A DNA stretch of 63,264 nucleotides, the filler included, from Pelomyxa schiedti (taxonomy: Eukaryota > Protista > Evosea): NCBI GenBank assembly GCA_020536535.1. It is 8 parts of 8 records of this genome, joined end to end, with 100 filler letters (N's around TTAATTAATTAA, not from the genome) between each part and the next. Parts side by side here need not be neighbours in the genome. Positions count along the whole stretch, not along the records: positions 34,388 to 51,785 come from JAHLWZ010001130.1; 7 more parts are not named here. One strand, written 5' to 3'. A program made the translations under genes and the position numbers. Under the pieces are notes generated by a model, which saw only the letters and a list, made by a program, of their open reading frames with translations, was not told where the DNA came from and did no database searches. This document shows positions 12,164 to 52,072 of this stretch, piece after piece (position 1 is the stretch's first letter; each line of letters starts with the position of its first letter).

Positions 12164-15013
12164 ATGGACTATGAGCAGATCCCACTCACATCTGTGAGTG
12201 TTCATTATACTCTTCTTTGTTGTGGAGGGGAGACTGGTGTAGCGTGTGGTTTATTTACGTGTTGTAGAGGGAGAACCTGCAAGATGACGTGATACCTCCT
12301 GGTACCATTGCAGATCCAGCACCTCCTGGCTCTCCCACTGCGACTTCAACTGGTGGACCTGTTGTTACTGCGATGGATCCGTCTATGTCACCACGACCAC
12401 GTGGTACTTTTGGAATGATGCCGTGGGTTCTACCATCCCACAAAAAAATCAAGGTTTGTGCTGCCTGTTCCCTGGAACTATGGCCACCCTTTTTTTTTTC
12501 CCCTGAGATTACAAAGAGGAATTTATATCTTTCTGTGTTGTTTTGTGCAGAAAGTGCGATCGGACAGATCATGGCTTTTGGCTGTTGGGAACATTGGCTG
12601 GGTCATAGTCTTTGGATGGTGGTTGGCTGGAGTGTTCCTTCTCGCTGGATGTTTGGTCAGTCTATCAATAGTTGGAGTGCCATACGGACTGTTTTGCTTT
12701 AGGTCGGAACTATTTTAATTGTATTTCTCTGAGATAATTATTAGGTTTGCCCGATTCCTACTATGGCCTTTCAACCTTTTCTTTGTTGTTCCGTTGGACT
12801 CTTTTACTGCCCCTGAGGAAGAACTGCCCCTTAAAGCCTCGATAGTACTTATTATTTGTTCAGGGGTACATTTCTAAAATGACTTCAGAAATCCACTTTT
12901 TCCCGGGTCACCATAATATTACCTAAAACTGCTCTTCACTGGTTTGGATATATATTCTACCTTATACTTGGTGCCCCTTTTATCATTTTGGCTCTGATAA
13001 TAGCACTTTGGCTCTCGTATTTTACAATAATATTCATTCCCATGGCAAAGGTTCCTTGGTTATTATATATTCTCTTCATAGACTTCTGAAAAAAGATTCT
13101 CAAAGTTCTTCTCAAGCTTTCTCCGTTTGACACTACAGTGATTTATTTTACCACTTCCCCTGGTTCTGTTCCCGAAAAAGCCAAAGTCCTAGTTACCCCA
13201 TGTGCCATCAACTTGAACTACTACTACTTCACTATTGGGGGCTTAAGTGTATTCATATTCAATTTGTTTATTTTTGTTCCTATTGCTTTTATAACTGGAT
13301 ATGTTCTAGAGTACGCATTTCCTTTTTTGTGCGCCACCATAATTTAATATTAGCCAGGGATTCTATTAACCCAATTGCAAATTTTGCACTGGGATTAATA
13401 GCAACAGTGCCTCTTGCCTTCACAATTGGCCAAGCTATTTCGTCACTCAGTGCAAAGTCTTCCTTTGCTATTGGAGCATTTTTAAATAGTATGCTCGGAA
13501 GCATAATCGAGCTTATCCTCTACACAATCTCCTTGGCGAAAGGGTTGACTGATCTAACAGCTTCTGGAGTAACGGGTATCCCAAATTATTATCTCTGCTC
13601 CTTACACTGTTTTAGGTGCGCTTCTGGGCAGTGCAATCCTCCTGCCAGCTATAAGTATGATAGTTGGAGGTATTAAGTATTCGGAATTACGATTCAATCC
13701 AATTGCTACGGCAACAAGTGGATCGCTATTACTTGTCAGCGTTGTGGGAGCACTAGTTCCAACGGTTTCCAAATTGTTGAATTTGTTTTCGAAGTTATAG
13801 TTACCCAAAAGATCTTCTATGCTGTATATGCTGATTACAACCTTGACTGCACTGAATGTGACGGAGACCTCATTTCAGGTGACGGTAGTCGAGAGCGCAC
13901 AGTCAATATGACTTGCACTGGATGCCAAATGGGGGAGGACACTGGAACTGGTAGTGCTTACCAGGAAGCGGCACTGCCGTTATCATGGCTTTGTGCCTGC
14001 CTACTCCCTCTGGCCTACCTCGTCGGTTGCATATTTGCGCTCAAGACACACTCCTGTAATTCAGTACTCTTTTTTTCTCATCTGACTTCAAAAGATATGT
14101 ACGATAAAAAATTTTTTGAGCAGAACTTTGTAAATAAGCCGGAACATGACGACAAGAATGGCGATAGGTATTCCCTTACACAGTGTAACTTTCTTGATGT
14201 TGTACCAGCAACGAGGAACAAAATACGGGAAATACCTATTGGGGTATCGTTCCCAGTATAATATGCCTTGTTGTTTGCGTTGTTCTCTTTGCAGGTTCTA
14301 GCTACCCTTCCCTTGGTCACCCTTCTCACATTCCACAGGTGTAGCGGATGTGGTTACTGCTGCCATTGAACCAATGCTACAACAGTTGGGAGTTTCAGAG
14401 GAGTTTATTGGAGTAACCTTTATTGCTATCGTTCCAAACCTTGCTGAATATGTCAATGCTTCTATGGTTTCAACAAACAATTACCTGTCAATGAAATAAT
14501 TTGATGAAAACAGTTTGCTCTGCGTGGAGACTTGGACTTGAGCTTGGAGGCACAGAGTACTTTCTAAAAATTCTAGAATAACATGCGATGCAGATTTCTG
14601 GACAAGGAGCGGTGCAAGTGTCACTCCTCCAGATTCCAATTTTGGGTAACTACCCACAACACTGCAACAGAACTAAACAGTCTCCCAGTATTTCTCAGTG
14701 CTATTCTATCCAATGGGGAGTTTACAATGATATTTTCCCGTATGCACATGGTTACAATAGTTCTTGCAGTTTTGATAAGAAACAGGCAAGTCCAACCTTC
14801 CCCCTAGCACGGTACTATCACCTAATCACGTTAACCCATAAAACCAGTACAATCTGGGACAGCCGGGCCAACTATTTCCTTGGATCCTCACTCTTGGTGG
14901 TCTGGATCATCCTTGTTGCAGCCTACTGGTTCGTGCCAGCCGAAACCGTTGTATCTTCTGTATCATCGTCCTTCTCTTCCTTCCTCTCATCAGCCTCATT
15001 TACCCCCAAGTAA
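12164..15013 (+). CDS. Type II CAX / VNX1-like cation:H+ exchanger with YccF N-terminal region
   Basis: GNIGWVIVFGWWL..SIVGVPYG (YccF), alpha-1 repeat GAFLNSMLGSIIELI, LKTH, alpha-2 repeat FIAIVPNLAEYVNA, and ANYFLGSSLL. Confidence 0.88.
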
Positions 15014-34287: not shown

Positions 34288-34491
34288 NNNNNNNNNNNNN
34301 NNNNNNNNNNNNNNNNNNNNNNNNNNNNNNNTTAATTAATTAANNNNNNNNNNNNNNNNNNNNNNNNNNNNNNNNNNNNNNNNNNNNGATGGCGTGCTTA
34401 CCCTGCGTCGTAATCACTCATCTCCCACGAGGCTTTTTTTTTTTTTTTTTTTTTTTGTGTTCCCCCAGGTTCTTTCCAGAGACACTTGGAG

Positions 34492-37400
34492 ATGTCTCTG
34501 AGTGAAAAAGGAAGAGGCACTTCCATTTTCATACCTTGGTTCTGTTGTCTTGCCAGTCCGAGATCCATCAAGGTGTTTGAACTGTTTGAAATGCGATTAA
34601 GCCGAAATCTGTGAACGCAAAAAACTCAAAGCAAACGGGTGCACAACAAACACGCGAGGGGAAGGTCGACCGGGGCCGGCGAGGCGGATCCCCGGTCCCG
34701 TCGGCGCCCGTGCGCATCGTGCTCCAATCCAACGGCGCCACGTCGTTCCCGGCCGAGTCGGACGTCGAGCCCCGGCGCAACCGCGTCCTCAGCATTTCCG
34801 TGTACGGCAACCTCATCAGCAGCATCCCGCCCTACATTTCGACTTTGCCGGCTCTGACCGAGCTCGACGTGAGCCACAACCGGATGGAGCATTTCCCCTC
34901 CGAGACGGTGGCTTCCCTCGCGGCGACCCTGAGGCACCTGGTGATCTCGGGCAACTCCATACGAGATCTCCCCCGCGAGACTCTTGCCTCACTTGGCAAC
35001 CTGATGACGCTTAAAGCCGCCCTGAACCCGCTTGGGGACAGTGGATTCCCTGCTCATGCATTTGGCCTCCCTTCCATAATTACCCTGGACCTTGCGCGGG
35101 CGGGCCTGAGGGGCGAATGTGGCGTGATTGACTTGCACCGCCCTGTTGCGAATCCGACTGTCAGTCCTCAGACCCCAGAGTCGACTGGCACTGCTGCGAA
35201 ATCCAGTGAAGTGGGCGAAAAGGCGGTTGCGTTACCTACCAGCCAACCTGGCTCCCCTAAAACATCCAGAAGTGGAACTTGTCATATAAATTATCTCATT
35301 CTGGACCATAATAAGCTGAGGGCCCTCCCACCCAATATCGGCAAGATCCATGAACTCCGCACACTGAATGCTTCCTTCAATCGCCTGACTTCAATTCCTG
35401 ATAGTTTATGTTCACTATGTAAATTAGACACACTGATTTTGTCAGATAATCGTCTCACATCTCGTAAGCCTGTTTCTTTGAGAATAATCTTTAAGCTTGC
35501 TCATCTTCTTAACAAGTTCCTGATGAACTGCCGCATCTACCTTTCCTTGCAACACTTGATATTTCCAACAACCCAATATCCGCTTTCCCTTCAAGCTGGT
35601 TTGTCACTCGCAATGGGGAATTCCGCAAAAACACATGGGTTTCCCTTCTTGAATTAGGTGCACATGACATGTTGCTTGAGCACCTACCAGATGATTTTTT
35701 TGCTCATTTTCCCTGTATTTCAATATGCAACCTATCCCGAAACAATCTTGGAAATCTTCCAGATCTTACGCCCGCCACAACGTTGGCTTGTCTGTATATT
35801 GTGCGTCCAAACCTCAGAAACTTTTTTCCTTGAAATTAACCACCAATTCCAGAGTAACAACCAGTTGACTACGTTACCAGAGTCTTTGTCTTCTATGGTG
35901 AGGCTTGAGCAACTTGACATTTCCTGCAACTGTATAGCACATTGTCCATCACTAACAGGTTGATTACAGTTCTTTTAACCGTTCCGGAACTAAAAACAAG
36001 TAATAGCGCTGGCACGGCTCAGTAATTTCACGGCTGGATACAATCCATTTTTGGAGACACCTGAATTACCTCCAAGTCTAATAGAACTGAATCTTTCTGG
36101 ATGTGTATTAAGAGAGCAACCTGTTGGAACTTTTTCCTCACTGAAGAAACTGTATTTATGTATGTCCAAGACGTTTACCCAATTTCAATCGGTTTTTATT
36201 TTGTATGATTTAGGTTTTTGTATTACTTTCACATGTAACGAATTAACTCTATTCCAGCCTTGAATGAATTTACAAGCATATCCGAGAATTTAGTATGCTC
36301 CCCACAGCTGGGAACTTTAGATGTGGCCCTCAATAAACTTGAGGTTCTCCCTGAAACGTGTGCAGGTCCTCTTCCATTGTTAGTACTCAATCATAACCCA
36401 AATTAGATTACATAATTGCTAATCGGAATAGTGATGCCATTCAAAAAACTCTTCCTGTTCACAACTCTGTGTCACCTTGTGTAAACATGTGTGTTGGCAT
36501 TGCTGATACACTGGGCCGCAGACTATCCATGGTAATGTGCGATTTCATCCACCACCAATTTATTTTTTAAGGAAGATGTTATCTGCTTTGAGGGTCAAAT
36601 TACCTCTGGGGCCGACTTCATTGGCCTCTTTGATGGACACGGAGGTAAAGAAGTGGCAGATTTTGTTTCAGCAACACTACCAGGTACGTTCTATCGAAAA
36701 TTGCAACTTCAACCATCTTAAAAAAACTAGGCTATTTCATAGGTGTTTTGCGAGACAATGAAGAAGAAGTCTGCAAAACTGCTTATCAACAAACTCAGGT
36801 GAAATGTAGGGAATATCTAGGGGAAGATGCAGAGCAGAAGGTAGTTATCCAAGTATACATTTAATGCACATTCTTATGTTAGTTTAATCCTCCAAGTTAT
36901 ATCTTTAACTTCCTTGGGGTTAACAACAGCAAGTTGGAACAACTGCACTCGTTGCACTTGTATGGGGGGATCACATTTTCATGTCTAACGCAGGTGATTC
37001 TCGAGCAATTCTGTGGCGTAAAGATCATGCTATACGACTCTCCAGGGATCATAAACCAACTGACGCTGATGAATATAAACGAATAAGAGATCTAGGGGGT
37101 AAACAGAGCATTACCACAACATAGTTTCTCAAGATTCTCCAAGGTTTTGTAACCGAGATTGGCCGAATCAACGGAATTATTGCCGTCTCTAGGTCTTTTG
37201 GTGACTTCTTTGTGCAACCTCTTCTGAATCCAGAGCCTTACATCAGCAACACCAAATTAACTGATGACGATAGATTTTTACTTCTTGCGTGTGACGGGGT
37301 CTGGGATGTCCTAACTGATGACAAGGCAGGGGAAATTGTCAATCTTGCACTTGACGCATATGGAGATGACCCCGAGGCAGCTGCTTATGTTCTACGTGAT

Positions 37401-38081
37401 GCCGCGTACCTCAATGGCAGCACAGATAATATCAGTGTAGCCGTGTGCCTTTTAAAGACGGGTGGTACAGCAAAAGAGCTAGCGGACAAGCCAAAAACTC
37501 ACAGACACAAGCATTCCAAACGCAATCCACCGCGGGACCCCCAGTGCCAAGCAGGGCTACTAGCGGCCCTACGGCATGCACAATCAGCCTCAAAACTAAA
37601 GCCGCAGGCACCCAAGTCCTCCACCAAAAAGCACTCCGCCGCGTCCAGTGCCTCCACAACAACAACAACAACAGCAGCAGCAACAACACATCACAGCGTA
37701 ACCGAGCACACAAGCAGCCCAAAGAAGGACCACACAGTGCGCTCCAGGCGGCACTCCAGGGCCTGTGTTGAAACCACCGGAACAGCCCATTCTCGGTCGA
37801 TAAGCACGATGCCTTCAAGCCTCACATCGACCGTACCGCCGGTGGAGTCAGAGGCCCCGCCCCCACAGACGCAGGCACCAACGCCAACATCGCTAAGGTC
37901 GAGCGACCACGCGCACTCAACCAAAAGGTCTTCCCGCAGCACGTTGGGAACGCCGCCAACTACAACACCACCACCACCACCACCCAGCGCAGACACATCA
38001 CCCCCGCCGTCAGTAAAGTCACCCACCCACAAACCACATAAAGACAGCCGAGGAGAGGACAAGTCTCTCTCCTCCATGTGA
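34492..38081 (+). CDS. LRR + PP2C protein phosphatase (PHLPP-like architecture)
   Basis: Many LxxLxLxxNxL repeats; PP2C motifs GRRLSMED, GLFDGHGG, GTTA, NAGDSRA, DHKP, AVSRSFGD, LACDGVWDV and DNIS. Start approximate. Confidence 0.88.
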
Positions 38082-38227
38082 TAAACAGTTGCCCCTTCTA
38101 CAACACCCTACGTTGTAGTAAGTGGCAAGCTGAGGGAGACTAAAAAAAACTGTTAAAAATTTCCCTTGGCCCTTGTTTTTCCTTCGTCGTCGACAAGCAA
38201 TCGTCGCACTGTCAATCTCTAGAGAGA

Positions 38228-39427
38228 ATGAGCACATCAACTCAAACAGCTACCCGAGTGGCGTTTGTTTCGCAGGGGCCGGTGCTGTTCACGTGCCCAC
38301 ACGGTCACGCAGTGTACAGGCACACGGACCAGCACACAGGCAAAGGGCGGCGCGAGCTTCATCGCAGGGAGGCATTCACTTCCCTGTTGGCTGCAACAAT
38401 GGCATCTAGAACAAATGGCAGCCTCATTGCATGGCGTGGTGAGAGGCTTTTGTTCCATTTCATCTTGGTTTTTTTTTTAAATTGTATTTATTTATTATCT
38501 TACATGAAGTTAACATAGTGAAGGAACTGCAAGTAGTGAGAGTAGGGATGGTGGACGTGATGGAGGGACATTGGGTGGGGAGAATGTTCCAATGGTTTAT
38601 GCCACCTCTTCTTTGTGTCATGGGCAGAGCCGGGGCTCTGCTGTGGTGTCTGAGCTTGACCTTGATGCTAACTTCTTGAGGCCGTGTCAGTACACAATGT
38701 CACCATGGCACTTGGCGCTCCTTGAATTCCGCAGAACGTGGGTACAGCTTGGTGTGCCAATGCTGCATGTTGATATTCATGGGAAGGTATCTTGCTGGTT
38801 TGATGTCTTTCATGTAATCCCTCTCTTAGTGCGCCACAGGTAGACAGACGCTCTGACCTCGATATTGATATCGGCATCAAGCCTATTCAAGTTCTGTGGC
38901 AAAATAATTCTGGACCGCACAACAGTGACTTCTGCAGGAGGATGAAGATGTCACTGTACCGAGGTCTAACTGGTGCTGTCAAAGGAATAAAAGGAAAGAG
39001 CCAAGCCCCAACAGCAGCGGCTGATCCATTATTGAGTTGGGGTGTGGAAATGGAGCCGGCACTAGATGGATATTGGGGAACTGGTGACTCCATGCCGACC
39101 ACAATTATTCACCAATCCGCAACCCTTGGCATTCCATCAGTAATGCTCGAATTCCCTTACAGTGTGCGAAAGGCCCTGTGCAGCCCAGACCACTCTCATG
39201 CACTAGAAGGCATCTGTCAATCCATAATGGAAACATACAAGGAAGTAGTTGTGCCAGCTGGAGTCACATCACAAGCTCAAGCATCCAGTACCATGGCACG
39301 ACCTGAGGTGAACAACTTGCTGACAAGTGATGCTCTCCATCTCCTTGACATCATCACAGGCACACCTTCTCACAACATACCACTCTCTGAGTTCCAGGAA
39401 CCAGAGTTGCCAGATGATTCTCTCTGA
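38228..39427 (+). CDS. Putative N-formylglutamate amidohydrolase-like metallohydrolase
   Basis: VLFTCPHG, DANF, PWH, LHVDIHGK, DIDIG and SVMLEF motifs over three exons. Confidence 0.5.
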
Positions 39428-39566
39428 TGCAACACCTATTCTATCATGGCTTATTTATCCATTTACTCAACGTGTGCTGCCACATTGGTTTTGTGAGTGA
39501 ATTGGCATTTGCATATGAATGTGAACCGTCGAACAATTTGAGGTGTCAGGGATCTCACACTCGAAA

Positions 39567-41452
39567 ATGATGGGATTACCCCTTCGGGTAACAGATCACT
39601 TCAAATTGTTTTTCCAACGAAAGGGTAGATGGAGGACGCACCGGATCCGGGAACTAATGCCTGGGTTGTTTGGGCATCTAAGATCTTGTGGAGTGTGGCA
39701 CTGGCACCACACACGTGCCTCATTCCCTGGAGCTCACTGGACGAAGACTTGTTACAAACCAAAGAAGATGAGAAGAACCTTGATACACTCTTACAGATAG
39801 CAGAAGCCTTTTTTCCGTGCTGTAACTTTTTTTTCCCCATACAGCTCTTTTATTAAGAGTTTTTTTTTTTTGAAAAACCTAGTTACATGTGTAACAGTTG
39901 TACTAACTTCTGTAGATTGGTTGCCTTGGCCGCAAAAAAATTAATAGCAGTTGCTGATGGGAGTGCAGAACTAGCGTTAGGTTTTTGTGCTACCTCTGGT
40001 AGCCGACGGGTGACAGAGTGGCTTCTTACCCATTTCCCGGAAGATACGACGTCAATTGTAAAACATTCACGCGGTTTCATGATTATGCACTTCTCATGCA
40101 TGAATGGTTGGATGGACAACGTCAAGTGGGCTGCATCCAAGTTCCCAGTCTCATGTGATGAATTGGCTGATACCTTCGTTTATTCCTGCCAGGAAGGACA
40201 GCTGGAGGTGTGCAAGTTTCTTGTGGAAAAATATGGGTTTACAGCAGATCATGTCCTCCGGGGCAACCGCCCGCCTGTAGAGACGATCCTTATGTATGGT
40301 CACTTGGATATGTTTCAGTGGCTAGTATCTACTTATGGGCTGACACGAGACAACTCTGAAATCAGCAAACATTTTGGATCTCTTCTCAGGCAGGTTCTTG
40401 GGCACGGGAACCCTGAATTTGCTGAGTGGTTCTTCACCCAGTTTGCAGTTGATCAAACTGACATTTTGGAGAACAAGATGGAGATTAATTACCGCCTTAT
40501 GGCTGCTGGAAGTGTCGAAATGGTCAAGTGGTTTACAGCCAAGTTTGAGTTTACCTGGATACCGCATCAGTATGTCATGGAAATTGCCGAGACAAGTCAT
40601 CTCGATTTTGTGGAGTGGCTCTGTGATACTTTTCCGAGTACCAGCAAGTATATCTTGAACCCAGCATGCAAGCAAGGGCATATTGATTCCGTCAAGTTTA
40701 TATGTGAAAAAATCTCTTTGGATGCATCAACTGTTTGGCCTTCCTTACTGGTCAGCCTGAAAGAAGGTTTCTTGGGAATTGCCAAATATCTGGAGACAAA
40801 ATATGGTCCCTTTGACCCAACGTACCCAGGACTACCAGATACCCTTCAATGTATTTGCAGCTCGGGAAATATTGACACACTCAAGTGGGTAACCACAAAG
40901 TATCCCCTAGTCATGCGGGTAGAACCAAGTGTGCTCTTGCCCCACGTTGCTAAACCAGCCCAAAAGAATCCAATTCCTTTCCTTCAGTGGCTTTTTGAGG
41001 ACCGCAATCTCGCTGTATCTAGCCTTCATTATGCTCAAAACGAAGTATTTCGCACATTTTGTGTGCAAGGGTACCTGGATGTACTGAAATGGTTCCTTGC
41101 CAAGGGCTACATTACTGCATGTGATTTACAACTCACTGCTGACGATTCTGAGAACGGCCCATGCACACCTCTAGAAATATACACCATCAACGGAAACATG
41201 GCAGTTGTCAAGTGGATATCTGTCAACTATCCCGAAATTGCCCAATCGCAAGCTGTGGCGTGCATCCGCCGAGCCTGCGCCGCCGACCACACATCCATAG
41301 CTAGGTTTTTACTGAGCCGGTACTCTCCTACTGTCCAGGAATTATGCCGGCACCCACCTTGCATAATGGAGCTGACTGAACACCCATTCATACTTCAACT
41401 ACTCAGGCGCCTCGTTGTTGCCCACACCCACGACTGGTGGGACTTAACTTAA
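39567..41452 (+). CDS. Ankyrin-repeat protein
   Basis: Repeated (S/A)C..G.l.(vv)KWL units in ORF 39887-41452; 5' exon uncertain. Confidence 0.75.
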
Positions 41453-41758
41453 ATTCTTGTTTGTAAATGGGGGAAAAAAACGGTGCACAACATAGTTAGC
41501 AACTTTCACAAGAGACCAGACCGTCGTTATTACGAAAAGTAATAACTTTGACCTGCATTTCACTGAAAAAGGAGAAAGCGAAAATTTTCGGGTGGTTTTG
41601 GTTTGAAACGATGTTCAGATTTTTTATGTTCGGCCTCCATGTCCCACGGTAAATAGTGACTTGTTCGTAAGTTACTTTATAAACGTTTATTATATAGTAC
41701 ATAGTAAATAAACACAACAAAAAACCTAAAAGACAAACAACAGACAAAACAAACAAAC

Positions 41759-42457
41759 ATGCAAGCTATTAAATGCGTTGTTGTTGGCGACGGAGCAGTT
41801 GGCAAGACTTGCTTGCTGATCAGTTACACGTCTGACGCGTTCCCAACCGACTACATCCCGACCGTTTTCGACAACTACAGCACGAACGTGATGGTTGACG
41901 GTCGGCCCATCAACTTGGGATTGTGGGACACTGCCGGGCAGGAGGATTATGATCGCCTTGTATGTGGAGAATTAGCTCTTTCACAACATACGTGCAACTA
42001 ATAAAATGCGCGCATCGCTTATTTAATATTTCCTCGACTGTAGCACAGCTGCTAATAAATCACACAGAGACCACTTTCATACCCTTGCACTGATGTGTTC
42101 ATCGTTGCATTCTCAGTGATCAGCCCGCCCTCATACGAGAACGTTGGCAGCAAATGGTTCCCTGAGATATCGCACCACTGCCCCAGGACACCGATCGTGC
42201 TTGTGGGAACCAAGACAGACCTCAGGGATGATAGGGAAGCCAGGGAAAGGGCCCACATCAAAGCCACACCCATCACGTATGAACAAGGAGTGGCAAGAGC
42301 AAAGGAAATTAATGCAACGAAGTATCTGGAGTGCTCTGCATTGACACAGAAGGGGCTCAAGGAGGTGTTTGATACGGCCATCAGGTGTGTGATCACGCCA
42401 CCAGTCAACGTCAAGAAGAACATCAAGAAACACAAGGGGGGTTGCAACCTCCTCTAA
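41759..42457 (+). CDS. rac: Rac-family small GTPase
   Basis: [45 protein letters not shown]|RPLSYP (GTATGT..CAG intron), ECSALTQ and CAAX box CNLL. Confidence 0.96.
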
Positions 42458-42654
42458 CATCACTGTGGCCACACAAACAACCCTTTTCAATTTTGTGTAA
42501 GAATTAACACTATTGTGTATTACAAAGTCCCACAATTCACACTCAGCCAACAAATATTCAGTTCAAGTACTAATTCTTGGCCTGGAAATTTCGCCGGTGC
42601 ATACAAAAAATAGAAATTAGCTACGGTGCTGCTTGTGCCTTTCACCCCTCAAAT

Positions 42655-42737
42655 CAATCGCGGGTTCGATTCCCGCCGTCCCCATACCCCACAGGGGGCG
42701 TCGCATAGTGGTTATTGCGTAAAGCTAGTAACTTTAC
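42655..42737 (+). tRNA. Circularly permuted tRNA-Thr(AGU)
   Basis: T arm GCGGG-TTCGATT-CCCGC (42660-42676), 3' acceptor CGTCCCC plus discriminator A (42677-42684), linker TACCCCACA, 5' acceptor GGGGGCG (42694-42700), D arm GCATAGTGGTTATTGC, anticodon arm TAAAG-CTAGTAA-CTTTA with AGT at 42727-42729. Confidence 0.85.
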
Positions 42738-42874
42738 TTCGAATTTGGTGCTCTGTTGTCTGGGTATCCAGGTGGCGGGGTGCCGCGAGGGGCAGGGCAC
42801 AACAATATTCTTCGAAACTTACACATTCTGATATAACATTGATGCACTGCAGTGCGACCACCGGCGTATTCCAA

Positions 42875-42881
42875 TTTTTTT
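42875..42881 (+). terminator. Putative RNA polymerase III terminator (T7)
   Basis: First long T run downstream of the tRNA, immediately after the closing stem. Confidence 0.5.
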
Positions 42882-43435
42882 CCATCCTCCTGTGGGGTCC
42901 CACCCAACCCAGTGACCAATCACAGTCGAGGTCACCCCAACCTGGAACTGGTTGACTCAGGCCTCTGATCTCCCATCACACACACAATAGCACTGACGTC
43001 GCCATCACTACAAGCACGAATCACACACAACACAGACGATAACGAGAATTAAGAGAACCAAGATAACTGATCCTTACCCTTTGGAGCTCCTCAGAATAAC
43101 CTACTCAGCTCCGAGAAGTACTGGATGTGGTTGGTCACTGGGTTGGGTGTGATTCGTGCTTGTAGTGATGGCGACGTCAGTGCTATTGTGTGTGTGATGG
43201 GAGATCAGAGGCCTGAGTCAACCAGTTCCAGGTTGGGGTGACCTCGACTGTGATTGGTCACTGGGTTGGGTGGGACCCCACAGGAGGATGGAAAAAAATT
43301 GGAATACGCCGGTGGTCGCACTGCAGTGCATCAATGTTATATCAGAATGTGTAAGTTTCGAAGAATATTGTTGTGCCCTGCCCCTCGCGGCACCCCGCCA
43401 CCTGGATACCCAGACAACAGAGCACCAAATTCGAA

Positions 43436-43518
43436 GTAAAGTTACTAGCTTTACGCAATAACCACTATGCGACGCCCCCTGTGGGGTATGGGGACGGCGG
43501 GAATCGAACCCGCGATTG
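43436..43518 (-). tRNA. Mirror copy of the permuted tRNA-Thr(AGU)
   Basis: Reverse complement of 42655-42737 in the palindrome arm. Confidence 0.8.
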
Positions 43519-43715
43519 ATTTGAGGGGTGAAAGGCACAAGCAGCACCGTAGCTAATTTCTATTTTTTGTATGCACCGGCGAAATTTCCAGGCCAAGAAT
43601 TAGTACTTGAACTGAATATTTGTTGGCTGAGTGTGAATTGTGGGACTTTGTAATACACAATAGTGTTAATTCTTACACAAAATTGAAAAGGGTTGTTTGT
43701 GTGGCCACAGTGATG

Positions 43716-44414
43716 TTAGAGGAGGTTGCAACCCCCCTTGTGTTTCTTGATGTTCTTCTTGACGTTGACTGGTGGCGTGATCACACACCTGATGGCCGTA
43801 TCAAACACCTCCTTGAGCCCCTTCTGTGTCAATGCAGAGCACTCCAGATACTTCGTTGCATTAATTTCCTTTGCTCTTGCCACTCCTTGTTCATACGTGA
43901 TGGGTGTGGCTTTGATGTGGGCCCTTTCCCTGGCTTCCCTATCATCCCTGAGGTCTGTCTTGGTTCCCACAAGCACGATCGGTGTCCTGGGGCAGTGGTG
44001 CGATATCTCAGGGAACCATTTGCTGCCAACGTTCTCGTATGAGGGCGGGCTGATCACTGAGAATGCAACGATGAACACATCAGTGCAAGGGTATGAAAGT
44101 GGTCTCTGTGTGATTTATTAGCAGCTGTGCTACAGTCGAGGAAATATTAAATAAGCGATGCGCGCATTTTATTAGTTGCACGTATGTTGTGAAAGAGCTA
44201 ATTCTCCACATACAAGGCGATCATAATCCTCCTGCCCGGCAGTGTCCCACAATCCCAAGTTGATGGGCCGACCGTCAACCATCACGTTCGTGCTGTAGTT
44301 GTCGAAAACGGTCGGGATGTAGTCGGTTGGGAACGCGTCAGACGTGTAACTGATCAGCAAGCAAGTCTTGCCAACTGCTCCGTCGCCAACAACAACGCAT
44401 TTAATAGCTTGCAT
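43716..44414 (-). CDS. rac: Rac GTPase (mirror copy)
   Basis: Reverse complement of 41759-42457. Confidence 0.9.
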
Positions 44415-44720
44415 GTTTGTTTGTTTTGTCTGTTGTTTGTCTTTTAGGTTTTTTGTTGTGTTTATTTACTATGTACTATATAATAAACGTTTATAAAGTA
44501 ACTTACGAACAAGTCACTATTTACCGTGGGACATGGAGGCCGAACATAAAAAATCTGAACATCGTTTCAAACCAAAACCACCCGAAAATTTTCGCTTTCT
44601 CCTTTTTCAGTGAAATGCAGGTCAAAGTTATTACTTTTCGTAATAACGACGGTCTGGTCTCTTGTGAAAGTTGCTAACTATGTTGTGCACCGTTTTTTTC
44701 CCCCATTTACAAACAAGAAT

Positions 44721-46606
44721 TTAAGTTAAGTCCCACCAGTCGTGGGTGTGGGCAACAACGAGGCGCCTGAGTAGTTGAAGTATGAATGGGTGTTCAGTCA
44801 GCTCCATTATGCAAGGTGGGTGCCGGCATAATTCCTGGACAGTAGGAGAGTACCGGCTCAGTAAAAACCTAGCTATGGATGTGTGGTCGGCGGCGCAGGC
44901 TCGGCGGATGCACGCCACAGCTTGCGATTGGGCAATTTCGGGATAGTTGACAGATATCCACTTGACAACTGCCATGTTTCCGTTGATGGTGTATATTTCT
45001 AGAGGTGTGCATGGGCCGTTCTCAGAATCGTCAGCAGTGAGTTGTAAATCACATGCAGTAATGTAGCCCTTGGCAAGGAACCATTTCAGTACATCCAGGT
45101 ACCCTTGCACACAAAATGTGCGAAATACTTCGTTTTGAGCATAATGAAGGCTAGATACAGCGAGATTGCGGTCCTCAAAAAGCCACTGAAGGAAAGGAAT
45201 TGGATTCTTTTGGGCTGGTTTAGCAACGTGGGGCAAGAGCACACTTGGTTCTACCCGCATGACTAGGGGATACTTTGTGGTTACCCACTTGAGTGTGTCA
45301 ATATTTCCCGAGCTGCAAATACATTGAAGGGTATCTGGTAGTCCTGGGTACGTTGGGTCAAAGGGACCATATTTTGTCTCCAGATATTTGGCAATTCCCA
45401 AGAAACCTTCTTTCAGGCTGACCAGTAAGGAAGGCCAAACAGTTGATGCATCCAAAGAGATTTTTTCACATATAAACTTGACGGAATCAATATGCCCTTG
45501 CTTGCATGCTGGGTTCAAGATATACTTGCTGGTACTCGGAAAAGTATCACAGAGCCACTCCACAAAATCGAGATGACTTGTCTCGGCAATTTCCATGACA
45601 TACTGATGCGGTATCCAGGTAAACTCAAACTTGGCTGTAAACCACTTGACCATTTCGACACTTCCAGCAGCCATAAGGCGGTAATTAATCTCCATCTTGT
45701 TCTCCAAAATGTCAGTTTGATCAACTGCAAACTGGGTGAAGAACCACTCAGCAAATTCAGGGTTCCCGTGCCCAAGAACCTGCCTGAGAAGAGATCCAAA
45801 ATGTTTGCTGATTTCAGAGTTGTCTCGTGTCAGCCCATAAGTAGATACTAGCCACTGAAACATATCCAAGTGACCATACATAAGGATCGTCTCTACAGGC
45901 GGGCGGTTGCCCCGGAGGACATGATCTGCTGTAAACCCATATTTTTCCACAAGAAACTTGCACACCTCCAGCTGTCCTTCCTGGCAGGAATAAACGAAGG
46001 TATCAGCCAATTCATCACATGAGACTGGGAACTTGGATGCAGCCCACTTGACGTTGTCCATCCAACCATTCATGCATGAGAAGTGCATAATCATGAAACC
46101 GCGTGAATGTTTTACAATTGACGTCGTATCTTCCGGGAAATGGGTAAGAAGCCACTCTGTCACCCGTCGGCTACCAGAGGTAGCACAAAAACCTAACGCT
46201 AGTTCTGCACTCCCATCAGCAACTGCTATTAATTTTTTTGCGGCCAAGGCAACCAATCTACAGAAGTTAGTACAACTGTTACACATGTAACTAGGTTTTT
46301 CAAAAAAAAAAAACTCTTAATAAAAGAGCTGTATGGGGAAAAAAAAGTTACAGCACGGAAAAAAGGCTTCTGCTATCTGTAAGAGTGTATCAAGGTTCTT
46401 CTCATCTTCTTTGGTTTGTAACAAGTCTTCGTCCAGTGAGCTCCAGGGAATGAGGCACGTGTGTGGTGCCAGTGCCACACTCCACAAGATCTTAGATGCC
46501 CAAACAACCCAGGCATTAGTTCCCGGATCCGGTGCGTCCTCCATCTACCCTTTCGTTGGAAAAACAATTTGAAGTGATCTGTTACCCGAAGGGGTAATCC
46601 CATCAT
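44721..46606 (-). CDS. Ankyrin-repeat protein (mirror copy)
   Basis: Reverse complement of 39567-41452. Confidence 0.7.
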
Positions 46607-46745
46607 TTTCGAGTGTGAGATCCCTGACACCTCAAATTGTTCGACGGTTCACATTCATATGCAAATGCCAATTCACTCACAAAACCAATGTGGCAGCACA
46701 CGTTGAGTAAATGGATAAATAAGCCATGATAGAATAGGTGTTGCA

Positions 46746-47945
46746 TCAGAGAGAATCATCTGGCAACTCTGGTTCCTGGAACTCAGAGAGTGGTATGTTG
46801 TGAGAAGGTGTGCCTGTGATGATGTCAAGGAGATGGAGAGCATCACTTGTCAGCAAGTTGTTCACCTCAGGTCGTGCCATGGTACTGGATGCTTGAGCTT
46901 GTGATGTGACTCCAGCTGGCACAACTACTTCCTTGTATGTTTCCATTATGGATTGACAGATGCCTTCTAGTGCATGAGAGTGGTCTGGGCTGCACAGGGC
47001 CTTTCGCACACTGTAAGGGAATTCGAGCATTACTGATGGAATGCCAAGGGTTGCGGATTGGTGAATAATTGTGGTCGGCATGGAGTCACCAGTTCCCCAA
47101 TATCCATCTAGTGCCGGCTCCATTTCCACACCCCAACTCAATAATGGATCAGCCGCTGCTGTTGGGGCTTGGCTCTTTCCTTTTATTCCTTTGACAGCAC
47201 CAGTTAGACCTCGGTACAGTGACATCTTCATCCTCCTGCAGAAGTCACTGTTGTGCGGTCCAGAATTATTTTGCCACAGAACTTGAATAGGCTTGATGCC
47301 GATATCAATATCGAGGTCAGAGCGTCTGTCTACCTGTGGCGCACTAAGAGAGGGATTACATGAAAGACATCAAACCAGCAAGATACCTTCCCATGAATAT
47401 CAACATGCAGCATTGGCACACCAAGCTGTACCCACGTTCTGCGGAATTCAAGGAGCGCCAAGTGCCATGGTGACATTGTGTACTGACACGGCCTCAAGAA
47501 GTTAGCATCAAGGTCAAGCTCAGACACCACAGCAGAGCCCCGGCTCTGCCCATGACACAAAGAAGAGGTGGCATAAACCATTGGAACATTCTCCCCACCC
47601 AATGTCCCTCCATCACGTCCACCATCCCTACTCTCACTACTTGCAGTTCCTTCACTATGTTAACTTCATGTAAGATAATAAATAAATACAATTTAAAAAA
47701 AAAACCAAGATGAAATGGAACAAAAGCCTCTCACCACGCCATGCAATGAGGCTGCCATTTGTTCTAGATGCCATTGTTGCAGCCAACAGGGAAGTGAATG
47801 CCTCCCTGCGATGAAGCTCGCGCCGCCCTTTGCCTGTGTGCTGGTCCGTGTGCCTGTACACTGCGTGACCGTGTGGGCACGTGAACAGCACCGGCCCCTG
47901 CGAAACAAACGCCACTCGGGTAGCTGTTTGAGTTGATGTGCTCAT
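46746..47945 (-). CDS. Hydrolase-like protein (mirror copy)
   Basis: Reverse complement of 38228-39427. Confidence 0.5.
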
Positions 47946-48091
47946 TCTCTCTAGAGATTGACAGTGCGACGATTGCTTGTCGACGACGAAGGAAAAACAA
48001 GGGCCAAGGGAAATTTTTAACAGTTTTTTTTAGTCTCCCTCAGCTTGCCACTTACTACAACGTAGGGTGTTGTAGAAGGGGCAACTGTTTA

Positions 48092-51000
48092 TCACATGGA
48101 GGAGAGAGACTTGTCCTCTCCTCGGCTGTCTTTATGTGGTTTGTGGGTGGGTGACTTTACTGACGGCGGGGGTGATGTGTCTGCGCTGGGTGGTGGTGGT
48201 GGTGGTGTTGTAGTTGGCGGCGTTCCCAACGTGCTGCGGGAAGACCTTTTGGTTGAGTGCGCGTGGTCGCTCGACCTTAGCGATGTTGGCGTTGGTGCCT
48301 GCGTCTGTGGGGGCGGGGCCTCTGACTCCACCGGCGGTACGGTCGATGTGAGGCTTGAAGGCATCGTGCTTATCGACCGAGAATGGGCTGTTCCGGTGGT
48401 TTCAACACAGGCCCTGGAGTGCCGCCTGGAGCGCACTGTGTGGTCCTTCTTTGGGCTGCTTGTGTGCTCGGTTACGCTGTGATGTGTTGTTGCTGCTGCT
48501 GTTGTTGTTGTTGTTGTGGAGGCACTGGACGCGGCGGAGTGCTTTTTGGTGGAGGACTTGGGTGCCTGCGGCTTTAGTTTTGAGGCTGATTGTGCATGCC
48601 GTAGGGCCGCTAGTAGCCCTGCTTGGCACTGGGGGTCCCGCGGTGGATTGCGTTTGGAATGCTTGTGTCTGTGAGTTTTTGGCTTGTCCGCTAGCTCTTT
48701 TGCTGTACCACCCGTCTTTAAAAGGCACACGGCTACACTGATATTATCTGTGCTGCCATTGAGGTACGCGGCATCACGTAGAACATAAGCAGCTGCCTCG
48801 GGGTCATCTCCATATGCGTCAAGTGCAAGATTGACAATTTCCCCTGCCTTGTCATCAGTTAGGACATCCCAGACCCCGTCACACGCAAGAAGTAAAAATC
48901 TATCGTCATCAGTTAATTTGGTGTTGCTGATGTAAGGCTCTGGATTCAGAAGAGGTTGCACAAAGAAGTCACCAAAAGACCTAGAGACGGCAATAATTCC
49001 GTTGATTCGGCCAATCTCGGTTACAAAACCTTGGAGAATCTTGAGAAACTATGTTGTGGTAATGCTCTGTTTACCCCCTAGATCTCTTATTCGTTTATAT
49101 TCATCAGCGTCAGTTGGTTTATGATCCCTGGAGAGTCGTATAGCATGATCTTTACGCCACAGAATTGCTCGAGAATCACCTGCGTTAGACATGAAAATGT
49201 GATCCCCCCATACAAGTGCAACGAGTGCAGTTGTTCCAACTTGCTGTTGTTAACCCCAAGGAAGTTAAAGATATAACTTGGAGGATTAAACTAACATAAG
49301 AATGTGCATTAAATGTATACTTGGATAACTACCTTCTGCTCTGCATCTTCCCCTAGATATTCCCTACATTTCACCTGAGTTTGTTGATAAGCAGTTTTGC
49401 AGACTTCTTCTTCATTGTCTCGCAAAACACCTATGAAATAGCCTAGTTTTTTTAAGATGGTTGAAGTTGCAATTTTCGATAGAACGTACCTGGTAGTGTT
49501 GCTGAAACAAAATCTGCCACTTCTTTACCTCCGTGTCCATCAAAGAGGCCAATGAAGTCGGCCCCAGAGGTAATTTGACCCTCAAAGCAGATAACATCTT
49601 CCTTAAAAAATAAATTGGTGGTGGATGAAATCGCACATTACCATGGATAGTCTGCGGCCCAGTGTATCAGCAATGCCAACACACATGTTTACACAAGGTG
49701 ACACAGAGTTGTGAACAGGAAGAGTTTTTTGAATGGCATCACTATTCCGATTAGCAATTATGTAATCTAATTTGGGTTATGATTGAGTACTAACAATGGA
49801 AGAGGACCTGCACACGTTTCAGGGAGAACCTCAAGTTTATTGAGGGCCACATCTAAAGTTCCCAGCTGTGGGGAGCATACTAAATTCTCGGATATGCTTG
49901 TAAATTCATTCAAGGCTGGAATAGAGTTAATTCGTTACATGTGAAAGTAATACAAAAACCTAAATCATACAAAATAAAAACCGATTGAAATTGGGTAAAC
50001 GTCTTGGACATACATAAATACAGTTTCTTCAGTGAGGAAAAAGTTCCAACAGGTTGCTCTCTTAATACACATCCAGAAAGATTCAGTTCTATTAGACTTG
50101 GAGGTAATTCAGGTGTCTCCAAAAATGGATTGTATCCAGCCGTGAAATTACTGAGCCGTGCCAGCGCTATTACTTGTTTTTAGTTCCGGAACGGTTAAAA
50201 GAACTGTAATCAACCTGTTAGTGATGGACAATGTGCTATACAGTTGCAGGAAATGTCAAGTTGCTCAAGCCTCACCATAGAAGACAAAGACTCTGGTAAC
50301 GTAGTCAACTGGTTGTTACTCTGGAATTGGTGGTTAATTTCAAGGAAAAAAGTTTCTGAGGTTTGGACGCACAATATACAGACAAGCCAACGTTGTGGCG
50401 GGCGTAAGATCTGGAAGATTTCCAAGATTGTTTCGGGATAGGTTGCATATTGAAATACAGGGAAAATGAGCAAAAAAATCATCTGGTAGGTGCTCAAGCA
50501 ACATGTCATGTGCACCTAATTCAAGAAGGGAAACCCATGTGTTTTTGCGGAATTCCCCATTGCGAGTGACAAACCAGCTTGAAGGGAAAGCGGATATTGG
50601 GTTGTTGGAAATATCAAGTGTTGCAAGGAAAGGTAGATGCGGCAGTTCATCAGGAACTTGTTAAGAAGATGAGCAAGCTTAAAGATTATTCTCAAAGAAA
50701 CAGGCTTACGAGATGTGAGACGATTATCTGACAAAATCAGTGTGTCTAATTTACATAGTGAACATAAACTATCAGGAATTGAAGTCAGGCGATTGAAGGA
50801 AGCATTCAGTGTGCGGAGTTCATGGATCTTGCCGATATTGGGTGGGAGGGCCCTCAGCTTATTATGGTCCAGAATGAGATAATTTATATGACAAGTTCCA
50901 CTTCTGGATGTTTTAGGGGAGCCAGGTTGGCTGGTAGGTAACGCAACCGCCTTTTCGCCCACTTCACTGGATTTCGCAGCAGTGCCAGTCGACTCTGGGG

Positions 51001-51681
51001 TCTGAGGACTGACAGTCGGATTCGCAACAGGGCGGTGCAAGTCAATCACGCCACATTCGCCCCTCAGGCCCGCCCGCGCAAGGTCCAGGGTAATTATGGA
51101 AGGGAGGCCAAATGCATGAGCAGGGAATCCACTGTCCCCAAGCGGGTTCAGGGCGGCTTTAAGCGTCATCAGGTTGCCAAGTGAGGCAAGAGTCTCGCGG
51201 GGGAGATCTCGTATGGAGTTGCCCGAGATCACCAGGTGCCTCAGGGTCGCCGCGAGGGAAGCCACCGTCTCGGAGGGGAAATGCTCCATCCGGTTGTGGC
51301 TCACGTCGAGCTCGGTCAGAGCCGGCAAAGTCGAAATGTAGGGCGGGATGCTGCTGATGAGGTTGCCGTACACGGAAATGCTGAGGACGCGGTTGCGCCG
51401 GGGCTCGACGTCCGACTCGGCCGGGAACGACGTGGCGCCGTTGGATTGGAGCACGATGCGCACGGGCGCCGACGGGACCGGGGATCCGCCTCGCCGGCCC
51501 CGGTCGACCTTCCCCTCGCGTGTTTGTTGTGCACCCGTTTGCTTTGAGTTTTTTGCGTTCACAGATTTCGGCTTAATCGCATTTCAAACAGTTCAAACAC
51601 CTTGATGGATCTCGGACTGGCAAGACAACAGAACCAAGGTATGAAAATGGAAGTGCCTCTTCCTTTTTCACTCAGAGACAT
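48092..51681 (-). CDS. LRR-PP2C phosphatase (mirror copy)
   Basis: Reverse complement of 34492-38081. Confidence 0.85.
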
Positions 51682-52072
51682 CTCCAAGTGTCTCTGGAAA
51701 GAACCTGGGGGAACACAAAAAAAAAAAAAAAAAAAAAAAGCCTCGTGGGAGATGAGTGATTACGACGCAGGGTAAGCACGCCATCNNNNNNNNNNNNNNN
51801 NNNNNNNNNNNNNNNNNNNNNNNNNNNNNTTAATTAATTAANNNNNNNNNNNNNNNNNNNNNNNNNNNNNNNNNNNNNNNNNNNNACCTCACTGATGCTT
51901 GGTGTGTGCGCCTTTTCCTGTTGACAAATTCATTCACTCCCCTTTGACTTCAGGATCTTTTTTCCTCGTGAGTGAGTTACGAGAATTGTACCAAAAGATG
52001 TTACCCACCATATGCTTTTGCACCCCTTCTTCTTTGGGCGCTTTCTGAGAAACATCAAAAACAAAAGCTTGT

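Follow-up and report, generated by a model that had tools for sequence, protein, structure and literature searches.

The window analysed here is a stretch of 63,264 nucleotides (nt), filler included, in which eight parts of the genome of the amoebozoan Pelomyxa schiedti are joined end to end. One of these parts, the 17,398-nt contig JAHLWZ010001130.1 of assembly GCA_020536535.1 (positions 34388–51785), carries at 42655–42736 of the plus strand an element in which the 3′ part of a transfer RNA (tRNA) for threonine, with anticodon AGU, is followed by a 9-nt linker and then by the 5′ part of the same tRNA. An earlier note, made from the sequence alone, had described this element as a circularly permuted tRNA-Thr(AGU) broken in the variable loop. 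The permuted order recurs in DNA assemblies other than the deposited one, the element is transcribed, and the processing signal that defines the known permuted tRNA genes is absent from it.

Anatomy of the permuted element

The two tRNA parts and the linker lie on the same strand and comprise the following features:

42655–42684 (+): tRNA 3′ part as a whole, spanned by contigs of both DNA runs (X1 and X2)
42655–42659 (+): variable-loop-like CAATC, tRNA positions 44–48
42660–42676 (+): T arm GCGGG/TTCGATT/CCCGC, with a perfect B box GGTTCGATTCC
42677–42683 (+): 3′ acceptor strand CGTCCCC
42684 (+): discriminator A
42685–42693 (+): 9-nt linker TACCCCACA, the loop closing the acceptor stem, without a T run
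42694–42736 (+): tRNA 5′ part as a whole, at whose first nucleotide RNA contigs begin
42694–42700 (+): 5′ acceptor strand GGGGGCG, 7 base pairs (bp) with the 3′ strand, one of them G-U
42701 (+): U8
42703–42718 (+): D arm (A box) with A14, G15, G18G19 and A21; D-stem pairs G10–C25, C11–G24 and A12–U23, with U13/U22 as a mismatch
42719 (+): G26
42720–42736 (+): anticodon arm TAAAG/CTAGTAA/CTTTA, with AGT at 42727–42729

Read directly from the sequence, the tRNA invariants U8, A14, G15–C48, G18G19, U33, A37, T54T55C56 and A58 are all intact, as are all stems, and the anatomy of a complete, undecayed cloverleaf in swapped order given in the earlier note was found to hold base for base. The break lies where that note had placed it, in the variable loop between positions 43 and 49, or more closely at the border of anticodon stem and variable loop (43/44 to 48/49). 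The permutation is exact, its parts corresponding to positions 1–43 and 44–73 with an overlap of a few nt at most, and ACCCC/CCCCA microhomologies stand on either side of the 3′ part (42644–42648 and 42686–42690). The conventional P. schiedti layout, a colinear cloverleaf with a T run right after the discriminator, is not that of the element, because TACCCCACA and the 5′ acceptor strand come next after its discriminator.

Recognition by scanners and the question of chance

Standard scanners overlook the element, as had been foreseen: ARAGORN found no tRNA in the piece as it stands, and Rfam gave no tRNA call on it and no match that reached threshold. Once the halves are reordered in silico, a check that the earlier note had proposed, ARAGORN recognises a tRNA-Thr(agt) with 62 of the 72 junctions tried. 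A custom scanner for the permuted pattern (T arm, 3′ strand, linker, complementary 5′ strand, D arm and anticodon arm) matched the element, its mirror copy and nothing else in all the sequence examined, and on 12 Mb of composition-matched simulated sequence it returned no full match and 61 partial ones (T arm plus acceptor closure). The absence of full matches in the simulated sequence rules out a chance origin, and the permuted tRNA-Thr(AGT) element is real, far beyond chance.

Several other identities were considered and rejected. The best Rfam matches, to the permuted transfer-messenger RNA (tmRNA) models RF04321 and RF01851, align the T arm, 3′ strand, loop and 5′ strand of the element at sub-threshold scores of 22.4–22.5 bits (thresholds 47 and 70), while a weak match to YrlA (19.7 bits) and one to mascRNA are likewise sub-threshold; all are driven by the T arm and acceptor stem. 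Membership of the two-piece tmRNAs fails on further grounds, with no tmRNA call by ARAGORN and neither a tag reading frame nor pseudoknots at the locus. A primer-binding site of a minus-strand retroelement was dismissed because the CCA complement is absent. Relics of a tandem gene pair beside the element were also rejected, local alignment having found no decayed halves in the flanks (5′ part against the upstream flank, p = 0.78; 3′ part against the downstream flank, p = 0.98).

DNA evidence for the permuted order

The contig that carries the element is itself a foldback: a repeat finder shows its arms (34388–43035 and 43138–51785, 8,648 nt each) to be 100% complementary around a loop of 102 nt (43036–43137), all Rfam matches on the contig occur as mirror pairs, and all its genes are annotated twice in mirror image, namely those for an LRR-PP2C protein, a 353-aa protein, a 521-aa ankyrin-like protein and Rac1A. 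The exon just upstream of the element belongs, by protein search, to P. schiedti Rac1A (KAH3732709.1), in agreement with the amoebozoan host assumed in the earlier note. The element and its surroundings accordingly recur as follows:

43291–43572 (−): mirror copy of the whole unit, produced by the contig foldback
43437–43518 (−): mirror copy of the element itself, in the fully complementary arm

The P. schiedti genome was obtained from seven single cells, with DNA amplified by phi29 polymerase (GenomiPhi) and an assembly made by SPAdes --sc from Illumina and Nanopore reads (PMC8887013). The foldback contig is probably a chimera of multiple displacement amplification (MDA) or of assembly with Nanopore reads, so that gene content would be inflated here in the deposited assembly, the genes of the contig being annotated twice.

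The order of the tRNA parts was examined in two DNA runs (X1 and X2) and two RNA runs (X3 and X4), for all of which the evidence consists of Logan contigs, not reads. A 1,160-nt DNA contig of X1 is colinear with 41866–42891 and crosses three borders: that of leader and 3′ part, that of 3′ part, linker and 5′ part, and that of 5′ part and trailer. A contig of X2, colinear with 41866–42699, crosses the first two. Both runs fall under one shared sample record. At 38174–39467 an X2 contig departs from both the window and X1 at 12 positions and in two indels, which looks like a second allele at a heterozygosity of about 0.8%; because of these 12 differences, X1 and X2 are not the same molecules.

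The element looks single-copy, since no other DNA contig was found on it; no further DNA contig of at least 90% likeness covers any of 42655–42886. A tRNA-derived short interspersed nuclear element was set aside as well, the X1 contig running through 41866–42891 at flank-level depth. Immediately beyond lies a sequence of another kind:

42891–43035 (no strand assigned): multi-copy repeat beside the foldback centre and outside the gene, at a DNA depth about 10 times that of the flanks

This repeat (mirror 43138–43282) shows indel variants at 42935, 42951–42955 and 43030, and other copies have different flanks. The window is trusted up to 42891 and not past it, because the repeat is multi-copy and variable and the X1 contig departs from the window at that position.

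The earlier note had worried that the arrangement might be a chimera of a normal gene, and the worry was partly justified. It holds for the contig, an artefact of foldback, and not for the order of the tRNA parts, which the X1 and X2 contigs cross. The foldback does not explain that order, which is probably not an artefact.

RNA evidence

The RNA runs are single-cell P. schiedti transcriptomes prepared by a modified Smart-seq2 protocol in which all RNA was polyadenylated in vitro and libraries were made by tagmentation, and they likely lose RNAs much shorter than about 100 nt (PMC10579272). They come from a later experiment and from other cells than X1 and X2. One X4 contig skips a 53-nt GT..AG intron at 38785–38837, so these runs hold spliced RNA and not DNA.

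RNA contigs are placed on 42694–42746 (in two variants), 42750–42808 and 42805–42865. They cover the 5′ part and the trailer; the element is transcribed, which the earlier note had made a test of its proposal. The contigs begin at 42694, the +1 position of the tRNA, with the start uncertain within the G run 42694–42698, and the RNA continues colinearly through the D and anticodon arms and across the proposed junction into the trailer, up to a loose end with a run of A behind 42868, 7 nt ahead of a T8 run. Because RNA was polyadenylated in vitro, this run of A marks a natural 3′ end and is no proof of polyadenylation in vivo. Contig depth is 500–740, against 3–8 for the mRNA of neighbouring Rac1A, a comparison that is qualitative only, the data being contigs; for the same reason, depth differences within the element RNA are left out of the evidence. 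The Rac1A mRNA contigs stop at 42493 and 42525.

No contig of either RNA run lies on 42526–42693, and thus none on the 3′ part or the linker, in libraries from which short RNAs are lost; nor do the X3 and X4 contigs, subject to the same loss, include any back-joined, ligated or circular form.

One X3 contig variant, at 126 of 642 in depth, lacks G26 (42719), a deletion that does not occur in the DNA. This fits the reverse-transcriptase signature of m2,2G26, as a hint and not a result; the D-stem pairs G10–C25 and C11–G24 of the element are identity elements for Trm1. The nucleotides GGU at 42747–42749 are uncovered, RNA contigs stopping at 42746 and resuming at 42750, and the gap may be an RNA end (a processing site) or a variant.

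Processing signals at the junction

In the known permuted tRNA genes the junction is processed at a bulge–helix–bulge (BHB) motif. All cut-site pairs around the Pelomyxa junction were enumerated, BHB geometry being defined by a bulge 3′ of its central-helix strand. This exhaustive search found no canonical BHB, in agreement with the earlier note, and no cut-site pair that yields a variable loop of 4–5 nt. The nearest approach is a partial motif with a CGA/UCG helix, a CA|A bulge, an AUUU/AAAU helix and a GG|U bulge, in which the lower helix is 1 bp long; it would leave a variable region of 15 nt.

The last nucleotides of the leader pair with the first of the trailer at −3.5 kcal/mol, a value matched or beaten by 61% of shuffles and 55% of genomic controls; the CAAAT/ATTTG helix singled out in the earlier note is no better than chance pairing. 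Two further candidates were discarded. An initial BHB candidate (CUU bulge, CGA/UCG, CAA bulge, AUUUG/CAAAU) has its bulges 5′ of the central-helix strands, and a 15-bp leader–trailer helix from a constrained fold (42633–42650 with 42788–42804) is no better than shuffled leaders (z = +0.6) and probably involves sequence that precedes the start of transcription. The locus lacks the processing signal that defines the known permuted tRNA genes, and for this reason it is not filed with that family, despite the same architecture.

Upstream elements, trailer and terminator

Around the permuted tRNA parts, further features give the locus the look of a unit of RNA polymerase III (Pol III), from just upstream of the 3′ part to the T8 run:

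42601–42620 (+): A/T-rich TATA-like stretch ATACAAAAAATAGAAATTAG, about 35–55 nt upstream of the 3′ part
42632–42640 (+): 9-mer CTTGTGCCT, at −23 to −15 (14 nt before the 3′ part), shared with the upstream region of a tRNA-Leu(CAG) gene
42737–42868 (+): trailer of about 130–140 nt, contiguous with the 5′ part in RNA contigs
42746–42785 (+): hairpin of 18 bp with nine G-U pairs and a GUAU loop (z = −4.4)
42875–42882 (+): T8 run, a candidate Pol III terminator, read as T7 in X1

By analogy with the upstream TATA-like elements of the permuted genes of Cyanidioschyzon merolae (PMC3978253), the ATACAAAAAATAGAAATTAG stretch may serve as a promoter. The 9-mer CTTGTGCCT also occurs upstream of the conventional tRNA-Leu(CAG) gene of another P. 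schiedti contig (L010, 13042–13124, minus strand; T7 directly after the discriminator), where it lies at 13138–13146 (−), that is at −22 to −14, or 13 nt before +1. In about 78 kb of P. schiedti DNA, searched on both strands, it occurs nowhere but at these two sites, and the coincidence has a p of about 0.001, an estimate that allows for the post-hoc search and involves one conventional gene. The match is suggestive of a candidate upstream Pol III or start-site element of P. schiedti tRNA genes.

No TTTT occurs from 42641 up to the T8 run, the linker included, and the T8 run lies about 140 nt past the 5′ part, much farther than in known permuted genes. Within the trailer, none of 500 shuffles is as stable as the hairpin, which is possible only in plus-strand RNA. 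The hairpin is preceded by GAAUUUGG, which bears a loose resemblance to an Sm site. An inspection of the trailer by eye only found no consistent boxes of C/D or H/ACA small nucleolar RNAs or of small nuclear RNAs, and no small open reading frame. The multi-copy repeat begins 9 nt past the T8 run and might, like the TRE elements in Dictyostelium, be directed to Pol III genes.

Sampling beyond the locus

In 67 kb of other P. schiedti contigs (L008–L010 and L012), the only tRNA gene is the conventional Leu(CAG) gene; there is no conventional tRNA-Thr and no second permuted or ectopic-intron tRNA. A paralogue search for further P. schiedti contigs returned none. A scan of Joint Genome Institute (JGI) metagenomes with a 23-mer of the 5′ part gave no match, and a scan with a 22-mer of the 3′ part gave seven unrelated bacterial tRNA-Leu/Trp loci and one orphan fragment. 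This fragment, in a soil metagenome (L004, 7130–7160, minus strand), is a T arm with 3′ acceptor strand, identical over 22 nt and with no tRNA around it, and is probably the remnant of a bacterial attachment site.

Interpretation and alternative explanations

The gene order at the locus is upstream element, tRNA positions 44–73, 9-nt linker, positions 1–43, 130-nt structured trailer and T8 run. The explanation that we prefer, tentatively and at somewhat short of an even chance, is that this is a genuine single-copy, transcribed P. schiedti gene, derived from tRNA-Thr(AGU) by exact permutation, whose product is a tRNA-derived small RNA with an end defined by RNase P. A Pol III-type transcript would start a few nt upstream of the 3′ part and extend to the T8 run, the linker offering no T run at which to stop. 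With the linker as closing loop, the 7-bp acceptor stem of this transcript could fold together with the T arm into a minihelix that RNase P and tRNase Z recognise. A cut by RNase P at −1/+1 (42693/42694) would then release the observed RNA, from 42694 to about 42868; the start of that RNA at the tRNA +1 position is what RNase P would produce on an acceptor/T minihelix. On the other side, tRNase Z and the CCA-adding enzyme may act after A42684 on the short 3′ piece, which could stay base-paired to the long piece through the acceptor stem, giving a two-piece tRNA-like particle comparable to two-piece tmRNA. We infer the use of Pol III and its point of initiation, the cut by RNase P, what becomes of the 3′ piece, all steps after the +1 cut and any function in translation. 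On this reading the BHB, splicing-endonuclease and circular-intermediate route of the algal permuted genes is not used at the locus. The suggestion in the earlier note of a new permutation type with a new maturation route stands as regards the break point, the missing BHB and transcription; a ligated or circular form was not seen among the RNA contigs, the RNA runs colinearly into the trailer, and a mature tRNA made by such a route is thus no more than possible.

Several points weigh against this explanation. The RNA 5′ end is fixed only within the G run 42694–42698, because the template-switch oligo also adds Gs, and both variants that start at 42694 carry two extra letters that do not fit the genome; position 42694 may moreover be the transcription start. 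All the RNA evidence comes from Logan contigs whose mismatches are uninspected, and the 3′ piece was never seen in libraries that lose RNAs under about 100 nt. The argument from the upstream element has one conventional tRNA gene behind it. No homologous locus was found in other species by the 23-mer and 22-mer metagenome scans, so there is no support from covariation or conservation. Finally, X1 and X2 fall under one sample record, and their independence as amplifications, suggested by the different alleles at 38174–39467, is only likely.

A second explanation, unlikely but deserving serious weight, is that the locus is a true permuted tRNA-Thr(AGU) gene, in which the precursor, or the paired products of RNase P and tRNase Z, would be cut near the variable-loop border and ligated into a mature, CCA-tailed tRNA-Thr with I34 by a relaxed-BHB or BHB-independent route, the observed RNA being an intermediate together with the excised trailer. 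The two parts are pristine and complement each other with an overlap of a few nt at most, and flanks without relics of the lost halves would be expected from selection acting on the inner halves alone. In the same direction point the tRNA-gene-like upstream 9-mer with its T-run terminator, the strong transcription, the X1 and X2 assemblies, in which no second DNA contig with the 5′ part and no near-identical conventional Thr(AGT) gene was seen, the contig breaks around GGU 42747–42749, which could mark a cleavage site, and the one correctly oriented partial motif (CGA/UCG, CA|A bulge, AUUU/AAAU). Yet no BHB is canonical or energetically meaningful, the partial motif implies a 15-nt variable region that is unknown for tRNA-Thr, and RNA contigs are colinear across the proposed junction with no back-joint contig among them. 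The 67 kb sampled hold no companion permuted or ectopic-intron tRNA, and no permuted tRNA is on record outside algae, a nucleomorph and Thermofilum. The single-cell assemblies are also incomplete, at about 82% BUSCO (PMC8887013), so a normal Thr(AGT) gene may have been missed.

The element might instead be evolutionary debris, a recently rearranged tRNA-Thr gene that kept its promoter and yields functionless transcripts, having arisen through loss of the outer halves of a tandem duplicate or through a microhomology-mediated insertion of the 3′ part into the leader. Although the single locus, the lack of a BHB and of any ligated product, and a leader–trailer helix no better than chance would suit such an origin, and the ACCCC/CCCCA microhomologies hint at template switching, every stem and invariant is intact, the flanks hold no trace of the lost halves, and the break is an exact permutation. 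Functionless tRNA fragments do exist, as the orphan 3′ part in the soil metagenome illustrates, but the RNA of the Pelomyxa element is among the deepest contigs of the region, with defined ends, a strand-specific 18-bp hairpin with its nine G-U pairs in the trailer, and a possible modification signature at G26. We consider debris distinctly unlikely.

That MDA template switching or the assembler made the permuted order from a normal tRNA-Thr gene is very improbable: the contig is an obvious foldback chimera built with Nanopore reads from phi29-amplified single-cell DNA, only about 300 nt separate the element from the inner arm end, and the two DNA runs share a sample record, but at least two precise, non-inverted junctions would be needed, whereas most MDA chimeras are inversions, the junctions from leader through 3′ part and linker to 5′ strand are crossed in the Logan assemblies of X1 and of X2, which were made independently (in X1 also that of 5′ part and trailer), 12 single-nucleotide differences elsewhere mark the two runs as different molecules, and RNA contigs from other cells run from +1 into the trailer, which is impossible from a normal gene.

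Comparison with known systems

As in the algal and archaeal permuted genes, the 3′ part of the Pelomyxa element stands upstream of the 5′ part, the eukaryotic invariants are intact and CCA is unencoded. Such genes are said to have been reported by Soma 2007, Maruyama 2010 and Chan 2011. Their hosts are C. merolae, Ostreococcus/Micromonas, the nucleomorph of Bigelowiella and Thermofilum pendens, 34 genes being listed in a 2014 review with junctions at 15/16, 20/21, 37/38, 50/51 and 59/60 (PMC3978253). Later literature adds none outside algae, nucleomorphs and archaea, and the statement in the earlier note that no amoebozoan case is known agrees with this record.

The resemblance extends to a short intervening sequence (9 nt in Pelomyxa, 1–74 nt in the known genes), to the isoacceptor, C. 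merolae also having a permuted Thr(AGT), and perhaps to an A/T-rich element upstream and a T stretch downstream, with no promoter or terminator in the intervening sequence. Unlike the known genes, however, the Pelomyxa locus has its junction at the border of anticodon stem and variable loop, lacks a BHB motif, and has a long, structured trailer that is still attached to the 5′ part in the observed RNA; no circular or ligated form was detected among its RNA contigs, and its host is a heterotrophic anaerobic amoebozoan.

The permuted two-piece tmRNAs of alpha-proteobacteria and cyanobacteria have the identical order of T arm, 3′ strand, loop and 5′ strand, and in them the loop is excised while the pieces remain paired and unligated. 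The Pelomyxa locus differs from them in being eukaryotic and nuclear, in having a full D arm and a Thr anticodon arm, and in being without the tag reading frame or pseudoknots of tmRNA.

A further group of systems, comprising mascRNA/MALAT1, plant tRNA-snoRNA, the herpesvirus tRNA-miRNA Pol III units and YrlA, uses a tRNA fold to set the ends of a neighbouring RNA through RNase P or tRNase Z. Bacterial YrlA likewise has T arm, acceptor and D arm in permuted order. Except in YrlA these modules are colinear, and they are separated from their cargo, whereas in Pelomyxa a half tRNA is covalently joined to it; unlike such modules, the Pelomyxa element also has a perfect Thr(AGU) anticodon arm. The split tRNAs of Nanoarchaeum equitans and Caldivirga consist of two pieces, and the Pelomyxa pieces could likewise assemble through the acceptor stem. 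Split tRNAs, in contrast, come from separate loci and are ligated by way of GC-rich leader/trailer helices that carry the BHB, while leader–trailer pairing in Pelomyxa is not above chance.

Other observations

Two observations lie apart from the element. At 42477, in the 3′ untranslated region of Rac1A, both RNA runs have a 5-nt insertion (CAACC) relative to the assembly and the DNA runs, which is either an allele or an assembly error. On L003 (11881–12364, minus strand) ARAGORN reports a tmRNA of 484 nt overlapping a tRNA-Leu(TAG) gene, and this call is likely false.

Implications

Permuted tRNA genes, known from a few algae and one archaeon and always bearing a BHB, inform the argument on how tRNA genes were assembled from halves. 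What is new at the Pelomyxa locus is a permuted tRNA architecture in another supergroup, with a new break point, no BHB and, in the observed RNA, a start at tRNA +1 and a 5′ part joined to a structured trailer. Standard scanners skip such loci, and in such genomes tRNA-Thr(AGU) could be reported as missing. The most far-reaching proposal, rather unlikely in our view, is that the locus would be the working, and perhaps the only, source of tRNA-Thr(AGU) in P. schiedti. As a permuted tRNA gene it would then have no precedent outside algae and archaea, and its junction in the variable region none at all; maturation would dispense with a BHB, relying either on cutting and ligation or on a non-covalent two-piece tRNA with transcript ends in the variable region. 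If the permuted gene is what it appears to be, either the phenomenon reaches a new supergroup with a new maturation route, or a half tRNA serves as the handle by which RNase P acts on an abundant small RNA.

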